Shown piece after piece: positions 6,915 through 53,518 of a stretch of 64,000 nt of DNA. The DNA lies in the sequence record LC680884.1; one strand, given 5' to 3'. A program made the translations under genes and the position numbers. How positions within the stretch are numbered: position 1 is the stretch's first letter; the number at the start of each line of letters is the position of its first letter. The notes beneath the pieces were generated by a model. The model searched no databases. It was not told the origin of the DNA and saw only the letters and a list, made by a program, of their open reading frames with translations.

Positions 6915-8348
6915 CTATTTTGTCAAGTCTAATTCATAAATTCTCTTTGCTTTTTTATTATATATATTTTGTCTCTGTTTTAATTGTTTTTTACAACTAT
7001 CAAAACCAATATCTACAAGATCAATATACCATACTTCTTTTCCTTCAATCTCCCTTAATCTACCTAATAACTGCTCAGTTAGAACTTTTGATCCAAATGG
7101 AACCGTATTTATAAGTATCTCTAATCCTTTAACATCAATAGCTTTCCCAAATGATACATCTGTTGTTACTATTATATCTTTTTCTAATTCCTTTAAGCGT
7201 TTATCCTTGTCCTTAATACTGGAATTATATCTTCCAATTTCTATATTTGGGTAAGTTTCTTTAAGATCATTAATAATAACATCATTGCCAGCCATTGTAT
7301 GAAATAATAGTACTGTTTTTTTATCAAAATTCTTATTTACTCTTTCAATAATATTTTTTGTAATATGATTCATAAATTCTTCATATTTAATATTATCCAG
7401 AATATATTTACACCATCTATTTGTATCAAAACCGTATTTTGATTTCATCTTGGCTTGATCATCAATACTAGGTTTGCTGTTAAATTTCACAATAATTATA
7501 TTGTGATAATTAACAATTTCATCTTCTTTAACTTTATACATTGGAACATCATTGAAAATATTTTGATAAACTTTATTTTCAATTGGATCACTTCGGGATG
7601 GAGTAGCTGTTATATAAACACTTTCAGTATTAGTTAATGAATCAATATAGAATATATTTTTATATTCGACATGTGCTTCATCATACAATTTAACACCTAT
7701 GCCTAAGTGTTTCATTAACTTATCAATATTATCTGGATTATCGTCAATATAGTTACCAATAGTTTTATGAATAGCAATGAACCACTTATATTGCTTTAGC
7801 TCTTTCTTTTTCATTTTCATTAACTTATCAATACTATTTCTACCACTAATAAGAAATATCTCTTCCTCTTTTACTGACGTAAAATTTAGAATACTCTTCT
7901 TCCATTGCTCCATTAAGTTCTCTTGGTCTACAAATACCATTGGTAATTTCTTAGACTTAAATACGTAGTTAATAGAACAGTATGTCTTTCCTTTACCTGT
8001 TGGTAAACATAAGAATTTCTGTGAATCATTTGTTTGTAAAAGAAATTTAATTGCATCTTGTTGTATTGAATCTCTAGGAGGATATTTTAGTGAAAAGGTT
8101 ACTTTATTATAAGGATCAACATTTAATCTTTCATTAACTATCTTATCTCTTGGAAAACACTTTTTTAATTTAGTGTAATCATAACCTCCAGGAATTAATA
8201 ATTGATTTGTATCTTCATCAATTAAAAATGCTGAAAAGGTATATTGAAAAATAGTTTTATCCCATACAGATAGTGATTTCTCTAGTTTATCACTTTCACC
8301 AGCTTTATAATTTTCAACAAGAATTCTAGTTGGTTGTACTCTTATCAT
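6915..8348 (-). CDS. Superfamily 2 helicase (UvsW/XPB-like)
   Basis: Walker A LPTGKGKT, DEAH box, motif III TATPSR, motif VI QLLGRLRE. Confidence 0.92.
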   Translation of the reverse strand: MIRVQPTRILVENYKAGESDKLEKSLSVWDKTIFQYTFSAFLIDEDTNQLLIPGGYDYTKLKKCFPRDKIVNERLNVDPYNKVTFSLKYPPRDSIQQDAIKFLLQTNDSQKFLCLPTGKGKTYCSINYVFKSKKLPMVFVDQENLMEQWKKSILNFTSVKEEEIFLISGRNSIDKLMKMKKKELKQYKWFIAIHKTIGNYIDDNPDNIDKLMKHLGIGVKLYDEAHVEYKNIFYIDSLTNTESVYITATPSRSDPIENKVYQNIFNDVPMYKVKEDEIVNYHNIIIVKFNSKPSIDDQAKMKSKYGFDTNRWCKYILDNIKYEEFMNHITKNIIERVNKNFDKKTVLLFHTMAGNDVIINDLKETYPNIEIGRYNSSIKDKDKRLKELEKDIIVTTDVSFGKAIDVKGLEILINTVPFGSKVLTEQLLGRLREIEGKEVWYIDLVDIGFDSCKKQLKQRQNIYNKKAKRIYELDLTK

Positions 8349-8364
8349 ATATTATCCTCTCCTA

Positions 8365-8955
8365 TTAAGAACCAAGAAATTCATACTCTCTAGAGAATTT
8401 TAAAAATGGATATTTATCATTTTCTTCATTAAAATTGATTTGTATATCATAAGAAATTTGATTGACTAAATCATCTCTAGTATTAGTAAAATAAATATAG
8501 TCGTTTATATAGCCAATTACAATATCTGTCTGAATGATTTCATATTCAATTCTTTCTATTTGTTCATATCTTTTTTTAATTGGGAGTTTAATAGATTTTA
8601 AAAATGATAAACGTTTTGTAAGTCCTTTTTTAGCGTCATGCATATCTTTATACTGTTTTTCAATCATTTTTTTATGTTTCTTTAATAATCTAGGATCTAT
8701 TTTATAACCTGTAATAACCATACTAAAAATATCAATGCTACACATAAGTAATGAATCAACTTCCTCTAAGAAATAAATATCAATTTTACGCTCATCAGGT
8801 ACTAAAACTAATTTTTCACCAATAATATAATTAGTACATAAATATTCTTTTATATACTCGGTAATATCTATCATAAGTTCATCAATTTCTTCTTGTCTTT
8901 TTGTAAAATCATTAATATGATTTCTGAATTCTTTTTGATCTTGAAAGGCTAACAT
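8365..8955 (-). CDS. Hypothetical protein
   Basis: 196-aa ORF with SD GGGAGAG, in the same minus-strand run. Confidence 0.65.
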   Translation of the reverse strand: MLAFQDQKEFRNHINDFTKRQEEIDELMIDITEYIKEYLCTNYIIGEKLVLVPDERKIDIYFLEEVDSLLMCSIDIFSMVITGYKIDPRLLKKHKKMIEKQYKDMHDAKKGLTKRLSFLKSIKLPIKKRYEQIERIEYEIIQTDIVIGYINDYIYFTNTRDDLVNQISYDIQINFNEENDKYPFLKFSREYEFLGS

Positions 8956-49015: not shown

Positions 49016-50167
49016 ATGGATCAAAATTGTGGTTTTCTAATTATTGAATCTACATCAGAACCAGTTAAACCTAATATTATTGAGCATAATAAAGATAATG
49101 TTGTAATTGAAGCTATTCTTCAAGAGGCAGAAGCTGGTAATAGAAATAGAAGGGAATATGCATTTGAAGCATTAGATGGTGCTATTCGTTCTCCTCAAAT
49201 TCAAGAAAAGTTAAGACGTAAATCATTGTTCGGAGAGGCTGGTAGGGTTGCCATTCATAGTAGAAATACTATGTCTAAACTCTCTTAATTGCTGGAAACT
49301 CCTTAGAGCTTATTAGACCACAACGTGACTGGTAACAGTGAGCGTGAAGGTTATAAGAACTAATAAGATTGGACAATCAGCAGCTTTATTGGTTAATAAT
49401 ATTTGTACATATATTTACCAATGGAGTTCAACGACTATCCCAAATGGGAGTACACTATAAGCATAGTGGAAATAGAGAGGTTCTTAACAGTAATGCTGAA
49501 GAACTTGATATAGTCTCAACTCTAGGGAAACTTAGAGCAGTTCATAAGAGAACGGTATGGAAGTAGCGAATCCATATGAAGATATTTGCACCCTCTTTCG
49601 GATAAAATGGAAAGACAAACGTACATTGATCAAACTAGAATGTCTCATGTTATTGAGAAATTATGGTGGGAACAAAAATTACTAAAAGGTGTGGTAGCAA
49701 CTACTAACACTGCTGTTGGTAAAGATATGGAAGGTTTAATTAGACAAGGTACTGAAGTAGCATTTTCAATGAGAGGTCTTGGTGGTGTTACTCGTAAAGT
49801 GAATGGACTAACACGAGTTGAAAAACCTCTTCACATTGTTACTTGGGATTGGGTAATCTTCCCTTCTCATTCTAATGCTTATCAGACAAATATTATTAAA
49901 GAAGATGCTATTCATCCTATGAATAAGAGAATTCTTAATGAAGGTCTAATGGTGTCAGTGGCTCAAGATGAAATCCTTAATTACATTAAGGAAGAGAGTC
50001 AAAATATTAAAACAACAGTTGATCATCTTGGTTTAGATGAAAGAACTGCCAAATTAGGTGAAGATGGTAAAACAGTTAGCTTCAATACTGAAGATGGTAA
50101 AGCTGTTTTATTTATTGAAGATGAAATTAAAAAAGAAATTGATAATTTCCTTTTAATTCAATTTTAA
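49016..50167 (+). CDS. Prohead maturation protease (T4 gp21-like); spliced join(49016..49243,49589..50167), 268 aa
   Basis: NRNRREY, GEAG|HP restored by splicing, FSMRG, TWDWVIFPSHSNA. Confidence 0.93.
49244..49588 (+). mobile_element. Group IA intron, ORF-less (345 nt), immediately before the catalytic His codon
   Basis: GCTGGT|AGGGTTGCCA..TTTG|CACCCT; P AATTGCTGGAA, Q AATCAGCAG, R GTTCAACGACTA, S GATATAGTCT. Confidence 0.93.
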
Positions 50168-50485: not shown

Positions 50486-51178
50486 ATGTTATCTAGTACC
50501 TATATCCTTCGGTTCATAGAAAAAAAATTAGGTTATAAGTTTAATGAACTTGAAATGGATCCAGATGAAATTATTGATAATATTAAAGAAGAAACATTAG
50601 TTACATTTAGTAATTTTTTCCCTTATCAAGTTGAAGCTATTATATCAAATGAAGATAAAGTTGAAGGAACTGGAAATCAATATTATATTAATACTGATTA
50701 TAATATATTAAACGTAGCAAGAATGTATGATAATACAACTAGATACTTTGGTGCAGAATTAGTACCTTATAGTAATAATATGATTGATCCTGTAAGTAGG
50801 CAGATTCAAGCTGACTTATCATCTATGAATAGGAATCCAATGACTTACCAATTTACTTATCCAAATATTATTACTATAACCCCTGCTTTATATACTATTA
50901 GAAAAACAAAGCTTTTATTAAATGTTGTCCATCCAGATCATTTTGGTACAATTCCAACTAACCTTCAAACTGAATTTCTAAAATTAGCATTATACGACAC
51001 GAAAGAAGTATTATATCAAATTAGAAAACGGTTTGCAAACCTCCAAACTGCATTTGGTAATATTGAATTATTTGTGGATGAATTACAAGAAGCAACAGAT
51101 AGAAAACAAGAGTTATTAGATAAGTGGAGACAGAATGTAGCAAAACAAGCAAATAGAAAAAAATTATATATCTATTAG
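50486..51178 (+). CDS. Neck/head-tail adaptor (T4 gp13-like)
   Basis: N-terminal ILRFIEKKLGYKFNELEMDPDEIIDNIKEETLVTFSNFFP resembles the gp13 start; located in the head cluster. Confidence 0.7.
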   Translation: MLSSTYILRFIEKKLGYKFNELEMDPDEIIDNIKEETLVTFSNFFPYQVEAIISNEDKVEGTGNQYYINTDYNILNVARMYDNTTRYFGAELVPYSNNMIDPVSRQIQADLSSMNRNPMTYQFTYPNIITITPALYTIRKTKLLLNVVHPDHFGTIPTNLQTEFLKLALYDTKEVLYQIRKRFANLQTAFGNIELFVDELQEATDRKQELLDKWRQNVAKQANRKKLYIY

Positions 51179-51179
51179 G

Positions 51180-51217
51180 AAAAGACATTATAAGGGAATT
51201 CCCTTATAATGTCTTTT
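51180..51217. terminator. Perfect 38-bp palindrome, bidirectional terminator
   Basis: AAAAGACATTATAAGGGAA|TTCCCTTATAATGTCTTTT. Confidence 0.85.
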
Positions 51218-51220
51218 AAT

Positions 51221-51517
51221 TTATTGCCAAGAGACCGTGATAGAATTTGATGTTGAATCATCTATAAAGGTTAAACCAAATTCAGAAAGTTTCTCTTTAA
51301 ATAATTTTTGATTTTCAAAAATTAATTGAAATTTTTCATAATCATCACTGTCTTTTAAGAAATCATAGTAATTATTTTTAGAAAACTTTATTGACATTTT
51401 TCCTTTATCAGCGGCATCATTCAAAGCAGGAAAAATAAATTCATCAATAATCTCATTCAATCTTAAGTCTAATTTTTTGAGTGCTACTGCTCTTAGATCT
51501 TTTGCGTTTTTGTACAT
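51221..51517 (-). CDS. Hypothetical phage protein
   Basis: 98 aa, SD GAGGAG. Confidence 0.7.
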   Translation of the reverse strand: MYKNAKDLRAVALKKLDLRLNEIIDEFIFPALNDAADKGKMSIKFSKNNYYDFLKDSDDYEKFQLIFENQKLFKEKLSEFGLTFIDDSTSNSITVSWQ

Positions 51518-51586
51518 CTAAATCTCCTCTTTCTATAATTATTAAAATTTATATTAAAAACCATAGTGAGATTATGGTTTTTAATT

Positions 51587-52297
51587 TCACCTAGTATATT
51601 CCCAAATAACATAGTCCAGTAATCTTGGACTCAGATTTGGATATTCTTTTGATAGTATTAATGATGCCTCTTTAAGTAATATCTGTGATTCATCTATATT
51701 AATCTTTCTTTGAAGGATCTCTTCAAGAAAGCGAATTATCATTCTATCTGGTTTTATTTTATCTTCTTCACCAGAAAGCATAAGGAAGTATAATAACGAA
51801 ACCCCTTTTCCTTGACCCTTAATACGTCTAATATCTTTTTCAAATTCCTTATTACCATATATGTTTTTTACATCTTGAAAATAATTAATATTATACTTAT
51901 TTAGAACTTTACAAAACTCATAAACAGCTTCAGATTTTAATATTCCATTAACTGCTGAAGTTCGTTGTCTATTATTAAAGATTTTTTGAGTGTAAAAATC
52001 TACCCCTATTTTTTCATAAGAATCAATAAAACTTTTTACAGATAACTGATTAGATGTACTAGGGAATGAACTACTTTCTCTTAATGGGTTAATATTAAAA
52101 TAAGTGCAATAACGCTTAATTACATTCTTTACACTAGTATAATTAGAATTAATAGAAAAGATAGAATCAATTACACATAAAGGAAGACTGGAATAATAAT
52201 ATTCATCTGGGAGCTTAGCATCTTTTAGATTAAGTAATTCTTTGCATTTTTCAACCAATATAATTTTATCTTCTTTTTTAATTTCTGTTAATTTCAT
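51587..52297 (-). CDS. HhH-GPD superfamily DNA glycosylase-like protein
   Basis: YSSLPLCVIDSIFSI; HhH segment IRRIKGQGKGVSLLYFLML; conserved-Asp segment IKPDRMIIRFL; C-terminal PRLLDYVIW. Confidence 0.75.
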   Translation of the reverse strand: MKLTEIKKEDKIILVEKCKELLNLKDAKLPDEYYYSSLPLCVIDSIFSINSNYTSVKNVIKRYCTYFNINPLRESSSFPSTSNQLSVKSFIDSYEKIGVDFYTQKIFNNRQRTSAVNGILKSEAVYEFCKVLNKYNINYFQDVKNIYGNKEFEKDIRRIKGQGKGVSLLYFLMLSGEEDKIKPDRMIIRFLEEILQRKINIDESQILLKEASLILSKEYPNLSPRLLDYVIWEYTR

Positions 52298-52299
52298 TT

Positions 52300-52626
52300 T
52301 TATTTCTCCTTTAATTTTTCTAATTCTTCTCTTAGTTTTAGATTTTCTTCCTCTAGTTTTAATCTTTCTTTTAATCTTAGGTTTTCTTCTTCTAGGTTTA
52401 ACTGTTCTCTAAGTTTTAAATTCTCTTCTTCTAATTTTATATAATACTCTTGTTCTTGGTTGTATTGTTGAATTTGTTCATCCCTTCTAGGAAGAATCCA
52501 AGGTATTACAGCTCCTATTATACATGCAATAATTATAAAGCTTGAGAAAGGTATTATACTAATTAATACTGTACCTCCCACAATAACCGCAATTGCGGCT
52601 AATATTACTCTACCATTAATATCCAT
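52300..52626 (-). CDS. Membrane-anchored coiled-coil protein with three 13-aa repeats
   Basis: Hydrophobic N-terminal 45 aa; LEEENLKLREQLN / LEEENLRLKERLK / LEEENLKLREELE. Confidence 0.75.
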   Translation of the reverse strand: MDINGRVILAAIAVIVGGTVLISIIPFSSFIIIACIIGAVIPWILPRRDEQIQQYNQEQEYYIKLEEENLKLREQLNLEEENLRLKERLKLEEENLKLREELEKLKEK

Positions 52627-52693: not shown

Positions 52694-53038
52694 TTAAATT
52701 ATATTAAATTTATCATTATGAAATTCTAGAAGCTTGAATGATGGAGTAGTTTTTGTGGTTCTTTGAAGAGTTAGTGGTTTTGAGGAAACTGAGTCTAGAA
52801 TTTTTTCATTTATATTACTACCAGTATCAAATATTACCAAATCGTATTTATTAACCCCCTTTCTATCAAGAAATTCTAATGGATCATTATCGATTTCATT
52901 AATAAGTTCAGAGCTACTTAGGATACTATAATCTTCACCAAGCGTCTTTCTTAGAAAAATTCGTTTTTCTTTTGTGAAATGATTCGTGACCAGTAGAGGA
53001 TCTTTGAATTCTGTCAGTTCTGATTTGGTGTTAGGCAT
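52694..53038 (-). CDS. Hypothetical early protein
   Basis: 114 aa, SD GAGGAGG, early-type motif AAGCATATATTAT at 53083..53095. Confidence 0.7.
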   Translation of the reverse strand: MPNTKSELTEFKDPLLVTNHFTKEKRIFLRKTLGEDYSILSSSELINEIDNDPLEFLDRKGVNKYDLVIFDTGSNINEKILDSVSSKPLTLQRTTKTTPSFKLLEFHNDKFNII

Positions 53039-53122
53039 ATATTATATTCCTCCTCTTTTAAATAGTCTGGTATTACAGGAATATAATATATGCTTGAAAA
53101 ATATTTTTAATACGGTAAATAA

Positions 53123-53518
53123 CTATTCACTAATTTTTTCTTGAATTTCTAATGTTTCTTCAAATAAGTTATTTAAGAAACCATTCATCCATTCAATTTC
53201 ATAACCTAATTTTCCAAAACTAATTTCTTTCATTTCAAACTTATTTATTTCATATAATTTTATTATATTTAGAGGATAATTTTTACTATTAGTAATAAGA
53301 ATGTTATTAAGAATACTAATAGCAACATCACTATTAATTATTAAAAGAATTTCTGAACCATTTTTAATGCTCTCAAGTATATCTAATAAACATTCTTTAA
53401 ATTGCAAAGGATGAAATGAATTTAAATCAATAATATTATTAAATGCGGGAAATAAAGAATAAGCAGATCTATAAGTTAAATCACCAGTTATAATAATAAG
53501 TTTTCCTTCTTTTTTCAT
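53123..53518 (-). CDS. Hypothetical protein resembling the C-terminal half of AAA_21/ABC-type ATPases
   Basis: IIDLNSFHPLQ..EILLIINSDVAISILNN resembles IIEEPE.HLHP.Q..QIIITTHS..IL; no Walker A. Confidence 0.5.
   Translation of the reverse strand: MKKEGKLIIITGDLTYRSAYSLFPAFNNIIDLNSFHPLQFKECLLDILESIKNGSEILLIINSDVAISILNNILITNSKNYPLNIIKLYEINKFEMKEISFGKLGYEIEWMNGFLNNLFEETLEIQEKISE

Follow-up and report, generated by a model that had tools for sequence, protein, structure and literature searches.

We analyzed a 64,000-nucleotide stretch of DNA from sequence record LC680884.1 (this whole stretch is referred to as the window), which corresponds to Bacillus phage PBS1, a phage with uracil-containing DNA (U-DNA), and we focused on gp306, a minus-strand gene encoding a glycosylase-like protein. 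The 6 kb flanking gp306 are 100% identical to PBS1 and 99.8% identical to phage AR9, and the encoded protein is identical to AR9 gp110 (gene g110). In GenBank, PBS1 gp306 is labeled 'DNA glycosylase' and AR9 gp110 'N-glycosylase; DNA lyase, endonuclease III/AlkA family enzyme'. The glycosylase-like nature of gp306 is already public through this annotation and is not newly noticed here, and no experimental work on gp306 or gp110 came up among the papers we searched. We detected 276 database relatives, among which the best non-phage matches come from Bacillaceae (55–58% identity, best E-value 2e-86). The ratio of nonsynonymous to synonymous differences (pN/pS) is 0.07 and 0.12 against the orthologues of phages Goe21 and Internexus, which shows that gp306 is under purifying selection. 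Since the open reading frame (ORF) has hundreds of relatives, a low pN/pS and documented transcription in AR9, it is not a chance frame. The first-pass annotation had placed it about 3 kb from ugi, and the distance is indeed 3.3 kb.

The gene is the last of a three-gene operon (g108, g109 and g110 in AR9) driven by an early promoter, which the AR9 record annotates at the same place upstream of g108 (Table 1). The g109 homologue encodes a two-span membrane protein whose tail is a tandem coiled-coil repeat of EEENLKLRE-type units, and in AR9 g109 is one of eight 'pre-early' transcripts. The criteria of the AR9 study class g110 as early and assign its transcription to the injected virion RNA polymerase (RNAP). 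Its transcript stands at 1903, 4563 and 3249 fragments per kilobase per million (FPKM) at 5, 20 and 40 min, as compared with 422, 682 and 2066 FPKM for ugi; phage DNA synthesis begins at about 20 min. A hairpin with a U run directly follows the gp306 stop codon and is the probable terminator of the operon. AR9 g111, located beyond it, is virtually silent (4.9, 1.9 and 0 FPKM at the same times). Homologues of g106, g107 and g111 are absent from Internexus and g108–g110 are kept; likewise, gp306 is retained in 4 out of 4 Takahashivirus genomes and the adjacent genes are variable. The stretch around gp306 is thus a variable accessory region.

Table 1. Features of the gp306 locus in the window, followed by members of the gp306 family discussed in the text (L and P numbers denote family loci and proteins).
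Feature	Position	Strand	Basis or remark
PBS1 gp306 coding sequence, 236 aa	51587..52297	-	ORF; 100% identical to annotated PBS1/AR9 genes
C-terminal helix residues R225, L227, D228, W232	51602..51625	-	invariant; model helix 224-235
Gly/Pro-rich loop and predicted catalytic Asp, residues 176-185	51743..51772	-	invariant residues; model
Helix-hairpin-helix hairpin, residues 159-167 (IKGQGKGVS)	51797..51823	-	conservation; in model between helices 150-157 and 166-174
R112-T113-S114...G118...K121 loop	51935..51964	-	invariant in both clades; model loop before helix 121-134
13-bp hairpin and U run, directly 3' of gp306 stop	51553..51585	-	RNA fold -11.9 kcal/mol, z -3.4
AR9 g109 homologue, 108 aa, membrane and coiled-coil	52300..52626	-	ORF; 'pre-early' class in AR9
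AR9 g108 homologue, 114 aa, first gene of operon, without known relatives	52694..53038	-	ORF
Early (virion-RNAP) promoter and transcription start site (G at 53076)	53076..53126	-	identical to mapped AR9 g108 primary start site
AR9 g111 homologue, 98 aa, downstream of gp306	51221-51517	-	ORF
ugi, 84 aa	55568..55822		ORF
Family genes paired with GmrSD_N gene	L006-L009 (8001-8693 or 3065-3757); L037, L038, L044
DUF6884 or DUF7225/DUF7669 fusion proteins	P0123, P0135
Further DUF6884 or DUF7225/DUF7669 fusions, DUF7225/DUF7669 once plus HTH_17	P0034, P0122, L064:7962-9125
RNase III-like fusions	L092:7560-8702, L100:7506-8600, L103:7533-8675
Further copies of the deep viral clade	L094 and L099, around 7960-8830

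The first-pass annotation had suggested a helix-hairpin-helix (HhH) GPD glycosylase, and structural comparison supports this fold. An AlphaFold2 model of gp306, built on an alignment of 48 relatives, reached a mean predicted local distance difference test score (pLDDT) of 95.8 and a predicted template modeling score (pTM) of 0.91. Foldseek comparison of the model with the PDB returned HhH-GPD glycosylases only (e.g. MagIII, Ogg1 and Ogg2), and VIA-align gave Z-scores of 14.4 for MagIII (195 of 215 residues aligned, root-mean-square deviation 3.1), 12.3 for MjOgg and 11.0 for EndoIII-3. We also carried out a structure scan independent of Foldseek against 48,161 PDB representative chains, in which the leading matches were MagIII (Z 14.2), S. 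pombe Mag1 (13.1), Thermotoga Ogg (11.9), AfAlkA (11.3), QNG1 (11.1) and EndoIII (10.4), with AGOG, MutY, OGG1, NTHL1, Mig, ROS1, AlkA and MBD4 further down. Overall, 22 representatives scored Z≥8 and 24 scored Z≥5, all from the HhH-GPD superfamily, and the remainder stayed at Z≤4.5. Neighbors in AlphaFold DB and the ESM Atlas beyond the family's own clusters are labeled HhH-GPD or endonuclease III, and the fold neighbors further include proteins named '5-hmdU DNA kinase helical domain'. We regard the HhH-GPD fold assignment as secure.

Sequence comparison gave a very different picture. Searches of gp306 against Pfam (E≤10), NCBIfam and PADLOC models produced no match, the HhH-GPD model PF00730 matched 0 of the 48 relatives at E≤1, and PDB sequence searches with gp306 or its 48-sequence profile returned nothing. 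In PHROGs, only its own unnamed family was retrieved. Alignment of the family by hhalign with a single Nth, with an AlkA-like protein and with a 28-sequence Nth alignment was not significant in any case (the Nth sequences were drawn from Bacillota genomes). Similarly, in a Paenibacillus genome that carries a gp306-family gene, PF00730 picks up three canonical enzymes and misses the family member. Because the fold matches are clear and the Pfam, NCBIfam, PDB and hhalign comparisons all failed, gp306 is a member of the HhH-GPD superfamily by structure that lies outside every described sequence family.

The two segments singled out by the first-pass annotation, an HhH segment (IKGQGKG) and a conserved-aspartate segment (KPDRMI), are both present, at residues 159–165 and 182–187 respectively. 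The former belongs to a helix-flanked hairpin found family-wide with the consensus IPGQxSGIS, a predicted DNA-phosphate binding loop. In the model, G176–P183 form a loop and D184, invariant and 23 residues after G161, immediately precedes helix 185–195; neither the 48 sequences nor a deep viral clade described below vary at G176, K182, D184 or R185. Across 48–89 aligned relatives, little or no variation is seen at G161, Q162, G165, S167, G176, K182, P183, D184 and R185, with Q162 replaced by His in one sequence. The positions that never vary in the 48-sequence alignment are Y35, C41, S48, Y53, Q84, R112, T113, S114, G118, K121, A124, G161, S167, Y170, M173, G176, K182, D184, R185, F190 and L227. 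Most of these are kept in the deep viral clade (~34% identical), as are Q162, R225, D228 and W232. The loop R112–K121, which contains bridge residues in the model, is a candidate wedge or opposite-base/pocket element, and R225, L227, D228 and W232 on the C-terminal helix are candidate pocket-closing residues.

The reported lack of an iron-sulfur motif was likewise confirmed: the four cysteines of gp306 (18, 41, 64 and 129) are scattered and none falls within the C-terminal 100 residues, so there is no C-terminal 4Fe-4S cluster. EndoIII carries the pattern L-P-G-V-G-R-K-T-A ... G ... V-D-T-H, which the family pattern I-P-G-Q-x-S-G-I-S ... G ... I-K-P-D-R parallels in spacing. We infer from this pattern and from secondary structure, rather than from superposed coordinates, that D184 may be the equivalent of EndoIII D138 and MagIII D150. 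In the bifunctional enzymes EndoIII and Ogg1/2 a catalytic Lys is located in the second HhH helix, 18–19 residues before the Asp. The corresponding position in the gp306 family is, by motif alignment, the invariant G165, and the invariant K121 and K182 lie elsewhere. As there is no Lys at the HhH site, gp306 is predicted to be monofunctional, D184 serving as catalytic acid of the glycosylase, and the 'DNA lyase' part of the GenBank note is doubtful.

Having placed gp306 in its superfamily, we examined how its family is distributed in cellular genomes. A profile search of 1.84 billion representatives yielded 1,937 clusters at E≤1e-3, 602 of them at E≤1e-30, yet a relative is encoded by only 337 of 185,579 species genomes. 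The family is found mostly in Planctomycetota, Chloroflexota, Bacillota and Bacteroidota, with further members in Pseudomonadota, Thermodesulfobacteriota, Deinococcota and other phyla and, among archaea, in Nanoarchaeota and Thermoplasmata; its tree intermixes phyla and domains. Fifty genomes were inspected for copy number: 48 carry one copy, one carries two and one carries five, the last being a Planctomycetia genome bin (G077; loci L052, L055, L061 and L063) with five closely related copies. An in-frame stop interrupts 5 of these 55 copies (~9%; G044, G056, G084, G085 and G087), which indicates frequent decay of the gene. Its guanine-plus-cytosine (GC) content is below that of the flanks at 53 out of 64 loci (median -4.3 points, Wilcoxon p 4e-8), with the largest deficit, -23 points, in Deinococcus frigens. 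The host genomes also carry canonical Nth, MutY and AlkA-type enzymes. The family gene is therefore a lone, often transferred and often decaying accessory gene, and its pattern is closer to that of single-gene defence glycosylases of the Dag/Brig type than to that of a housekeeping repair enzyme.

The first-pass annotation had also proposed to look at homologue neighborhoods, and these were informative in part: about 10 of 108 neighbors match PADLOC defence models (RmrA/T, type I restriction endonuclease, JetA, DpdA and methyltransferase), while a recurrent partner is missing. All-against-all BLAST of 73 loci revealed no recurrent neighbor, and in a Pfam search of the 108 neighbors no family recurred more than 2 times. 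A conserved operon partner was rejected on these grounds, as the only pairing, with a GmrSD_N gene, is limited to one lineage. In this 95-member lineage of uncultured bacteria, represented in GTDB by goat-duodenum isolates and a RUG bin among others, the family gene lies 10 bp downstream of a gene for a 603-aa protein, in which we detected the GmrSD N-terminal (DUF262) domain only and no nuclease domain. The pair is found inside a defence island with Abi_2, a type I restriction-modification system and other defence genes, and may constitute a two-gene modification-dependent restriction system with the glycosylase as effector. Elsewhere, flanking genes include those for aspartyl-tRNA synthetase, GyrB, IF-2, glycoside hydrolases, pyruvate kinase and NadA, and the neighbors of the Bacillales copies encode an aldo-keto reductase, a GntP permease, a glycerate kinase and helix-turn-helix regulators. 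At one locus (L018:1760-5335) a family copy and a DpdA-like gene (720 aa) converge, and QueC comes next after the latter. A general link to 7-deazaguanine DNA modification was rejected, as no more than 1 of 50 host genomes encodes DpdA. The placement between terminase and portal genes in the viral clade described below, together with conserved genes as neighbors, also raised the idea of a selfish element of the homing-endonuclease kind; this was rejected, since the flanks differ in nearly every genome and the protein is highly conserved.

Several family members are fused to other domains (Table 1). DUF6884 (YaaA-like), which the Pfam literature links to binding of abasic and RNA-base lesions, is attached at either end; further partners are DUF7225/DUF7669, for which we looked for a structure or function and found none, ankyrin repeats and a methyltransferase.

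Viral members are few. In line with the description of gp306 as accessory, only four of 50,697 cultured phage genomes carry the gene, namely those of PBS1, AR9, Goe21 and Internexus; as other U-DNA phages are without it, gp306 is not part of a shared U-DNA phage toolkit. IMG/VR contributed 14 family loci, 12 of which form the separate deep clade, where the family gene is situated between the large terminase and portal genes of an HK97-type head module. On three of these viral contigs an RNase III-like domain, in which two of the usual catalytic acids are absent, is fused to the N-terminus. In the tree, gp306 is sister to a Heyndrickxia/Domibacillus/Paenibacillus group (support 93/93), and this placement, together with the 55–58% identical Bacillaceae matches, points to an exchange with Bacillales genomes.

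From these data we consider that gp306 is probably an active glycosylase on a non-canonical base. The gene would have been acquired by a PBS1-like ancestor from a Bacillales genome, or exchanged with one, and its expression from the virion-RNAP promoter starts within minutes of injection. The fold suggests a mechanism in which the I(P/K)GQxxG hairpin would grip the DNA backbone and a nucleotide would be flipped into a pocket of invariant residues (Y53, R112-T113-S114, K121, Y170, R225, D228 and W232). Asp184, at the helix start after the Gly/Pro loop, would then promote cleavage of the N-glycosidic bond and, in the absence of an HhH lysine, an abasic site would be left to host apurinic/apyrimidinic (AP) endonucleases. 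The substrate would be an abnormal base, either damaged or of the hypermodified type found in phages, and the U-DNA of PBS1 itself would be immune. Thymine is almost certainly not the substrate because close relatives live partnerless in thymine-DNA bacteria and archaea, and A-paired uracil is excluded because it makes up the phage's own DNA. The substrate should thus be rare or absent in both thymine DNA (T-DNA) and U-DNA and is therefore a lesion or a foreign modified base. The same argument bears on the proposal of the first-pass annotation that the enzyme could tell T-DNA from U-DNA and harm host or competitor DNA. Early expression of an accessory gene near ugi and the parallel with T4, whose nucleases attack cytosine DNA, speak for such a role, yet relatives 55–58% identical to gp306, with all invariant residues and no partner or immunity gene, reside as solitary genes in T-DNA genomes. 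Moreover, induction of host genes continues 40 min into AR9 infection, with host mRNA down only ~2-fold, and PBS1 and AR9 are generalized transducers that package long intact host DNA. We regard a thymine-directed enzyme as very improbable. Action on something other than a DNA base, whether as a hydrolase of free modified nucleotides (QNG1/DUF2419-like), on RNA or RNA-DNA hybrids, or as a non-catalytic binder, seems improbable to a lesser degree. QNG1 shares the fold (Z 11.0-11.1), the '5-hmdU DNA kinase helical domain' proteins are among the fold neighbors, sequence models of DNA glycosylases all fail to match and part of the viral clade carries the RNase III-like fusion. On the other hand, DNA glycosylases outscore QNG1, the canonical hairpin that clamps the DNA backbone is retained with its glycines invariant, the RNase III-like domain is short of two catalytic acids and some 20 invariant residues argue for catalysis.

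Two uses of an enzyme acting on an abnormal base, both raised by the first-pass annotation, then remain to be compared. Our overall explanation, put forward tentatively, is that gp306 is a captured stand-alone glycosylase in which a role in conflict is favored; that this role is directed against rival phages with modified DNA or other foreign DNA, as a form of superinfection exclusion, is possible but similarly uncertain. Conflict use is slightly favored over repair of the phage's own DNA because PBS1 U-DNA would be immune. It is also favored by the mobile, sporadic, low-GC and decaying distribution of the family, by the GmrSD_N pairing and the prophage-cargo position of the viral clade, by the very early and very high expression beside a pre-early membrane protein, and by a precedent for defence in Dag1-Dag17, orphan HhH-fold enzymes that act as single-gene defences against modified-base phages (Getz et al., bioRxiv 10.1101/2025.10.29.685425). 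In its most specific form, which we consider unlikely as it stands, gp306 would be a bacterial anti-phage glycosylase turned into an inter-phage weapon that excises a base unique to rival Bacillus phages. Candidate targets exist among Bacillus phages, some of which carry hydroxymethyluracil and others hypermodified thymine; SPO1-type hydroxymethyluracil and the hypermodified thymines of SP10 and SP15 would serve as examples, at the same low likelihood, with plain U and T ignored.

Alternatively, gp306 may be a base excision repair enzyme for lesions in the virion U-DNA that fall outside UNG repair when Ugi is present. Such lesions would include purines that are alkylated or oxidised and U:G arising from cytosine deamination, and the enzyme would work before replication starts at ~20 min, in the manner of T4 endonuclease V on ultraviolet (UV) damage. 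This explanation is rather unlikely in our estimate, in its lesions and timing as in its outline, although one version of it, a U:G-specific enzyme insensitive to Ugi, is attractive. It is in keeping with the top structures, MagIII (Z 14.2-14.4) and Mag1 (13.1), which are both monofunctional glycosylases for 3-methyladenine, with g110 transcript levels that peak ahead of phage DNA synthesis, and with the DUF6884 fusions and the presence of SRAP and exonuclease VII among family neighbors. Repair glycosylases are furthermore known from phages and giant viruses, with structure matches in BFVD, and the Bacillales copies lie amid metabolic genes. However, a very sparse, low-GC, decaying distribution driven by horizontal gene transfer is unusual for a repair gene, other U-DNA phages do without it, AR9 has no annotated AP endonuclease to finish a phage pathway and the cellular hosts already possess Nth, MutY and AlkA-type enzymes of the canonical kind. 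Nor do the many invariant polar residues suggest a loose aromatic pocket as in alkylpurine enzymes; they fit recognition of one specific base better. Against the conflict explanation, in turn, several observations have to be set. The closest solved structures to gp306 are alkylpurine repair enzymes, which point to repair, and the DUF6884 fusions fit repair as well. Housekeeping genes lie beside several family copies, the surroundings of the nearest Bacillales relatives are metabolic rather than defence islands, and the family gene does not stand out clearly as part of defence islands in general. No PADLOC model covers gp306, and membership in a Dag family could not be shown: the family motifs and six accessions were not among the entries listed in the Dag supplement, which gives accessions and no sequences. 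Finally, the role of D184 is inferred from motif spacing and secondary structure, and a high mRNA level is no proof of a weapon.

Two other features were noted elsewhere in the window. A perfect 17-bp palindromic hairpin with A/T runs on its flanks (51180-51217) separates the convergent genes 50486-51178 (+) and 51221-51517 (-) and looks like a bidirectional terminator. The prohead scaffold/protease gene (49016-50167, +), annotated in AR9 as two joined pieces, consists here of two ORFs (49016-49288 and 49586-50167) about 300 bases apart, and the gap suggests an intron or intervening element.

A U-DNA phage that blocks the host uracil glycosylase thus also makes, abundantly and at the onset of infection, a different protein with a glycosylase fold. 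This protein is an uncharacterised new member of a known enzyme superfamily and defines a sizeable family that is labeled 'hypothetical' everywhere and absent from Pfam, NCBIfam and PADLOC. Identifying its substrate would annotate an orphan family of ~1,900 clusters and would show whether base-excision enzymes pass between bacterial defence and phage offence or repair. If gp306 were indeed an inter-phage weapon of this kind, superinfection exclusion by base excision would be seen in a lytic phage for the first time. PBS1/AR9 in B. subtilis 168 provides a tractable test system.

Comparison with known systems places gp306 between several well-described groups of enzymes. It has the same fold as EndoIII, Ogg2 and MutY (PF00730; Z 9-12), and hairpin, Gly/Pro loop and Asp follow one another as they do there; in contrast to them, its family has no PF00730 match, no HhH lysine and no Fe-S cluster. 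The closest structural likeness is with MagIII of H. pylori and Mag1 of S. pombe, to which ~190 residues align (Z 14.2-14.4 and 13.1). These are also small, single-domain proteins with an HhH hairpin, an Asp and no Fe-S cluster, and gp306 would be monofunctional as predicted. Identity to them is only 8–14%, there is no hidden Markov model or profile link, the pocket residues of gp306 differ (RTS...K, KPDR and R..LD...W) and, unlike a lineage repair gene, the gp306 family is mobile and sporadic. T4 endonuclease V (denV) and other viral repair glycosylases are similarly phage-encoded and made before replication, but denV is unrelated in fold, has pyrimidine dimers as its defined substrate and is also a lyase. 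Brig1/Brig2 and R.PabI use base excision as a weapon against foreign DNA, as gp306 would in conflict with other phages; their folds (uracil-DNA glycosylase and HALFPIPE, respectively) are distinct from HhH-GPD, and R.PabI works with a methyltransferase partner, none of which is linked to gp306. Similarly to Dag1-Dag17, the gp306 family is a sequence-orphan HhH-fold family that is single-gene, sporadic, horizontally spread and found at AT-rich sites. Dag1, however, is bifunctional with an essential Lys and every Dag family is dominated by Pseudomonadota (bioRxiv 10.1101/2025.10.29.685425), whereas the gp306 family has Gly at the HhH lysine site and is not dominated by Pseudomonadota, and the gp306 gene itself is carried by a lytic phage.

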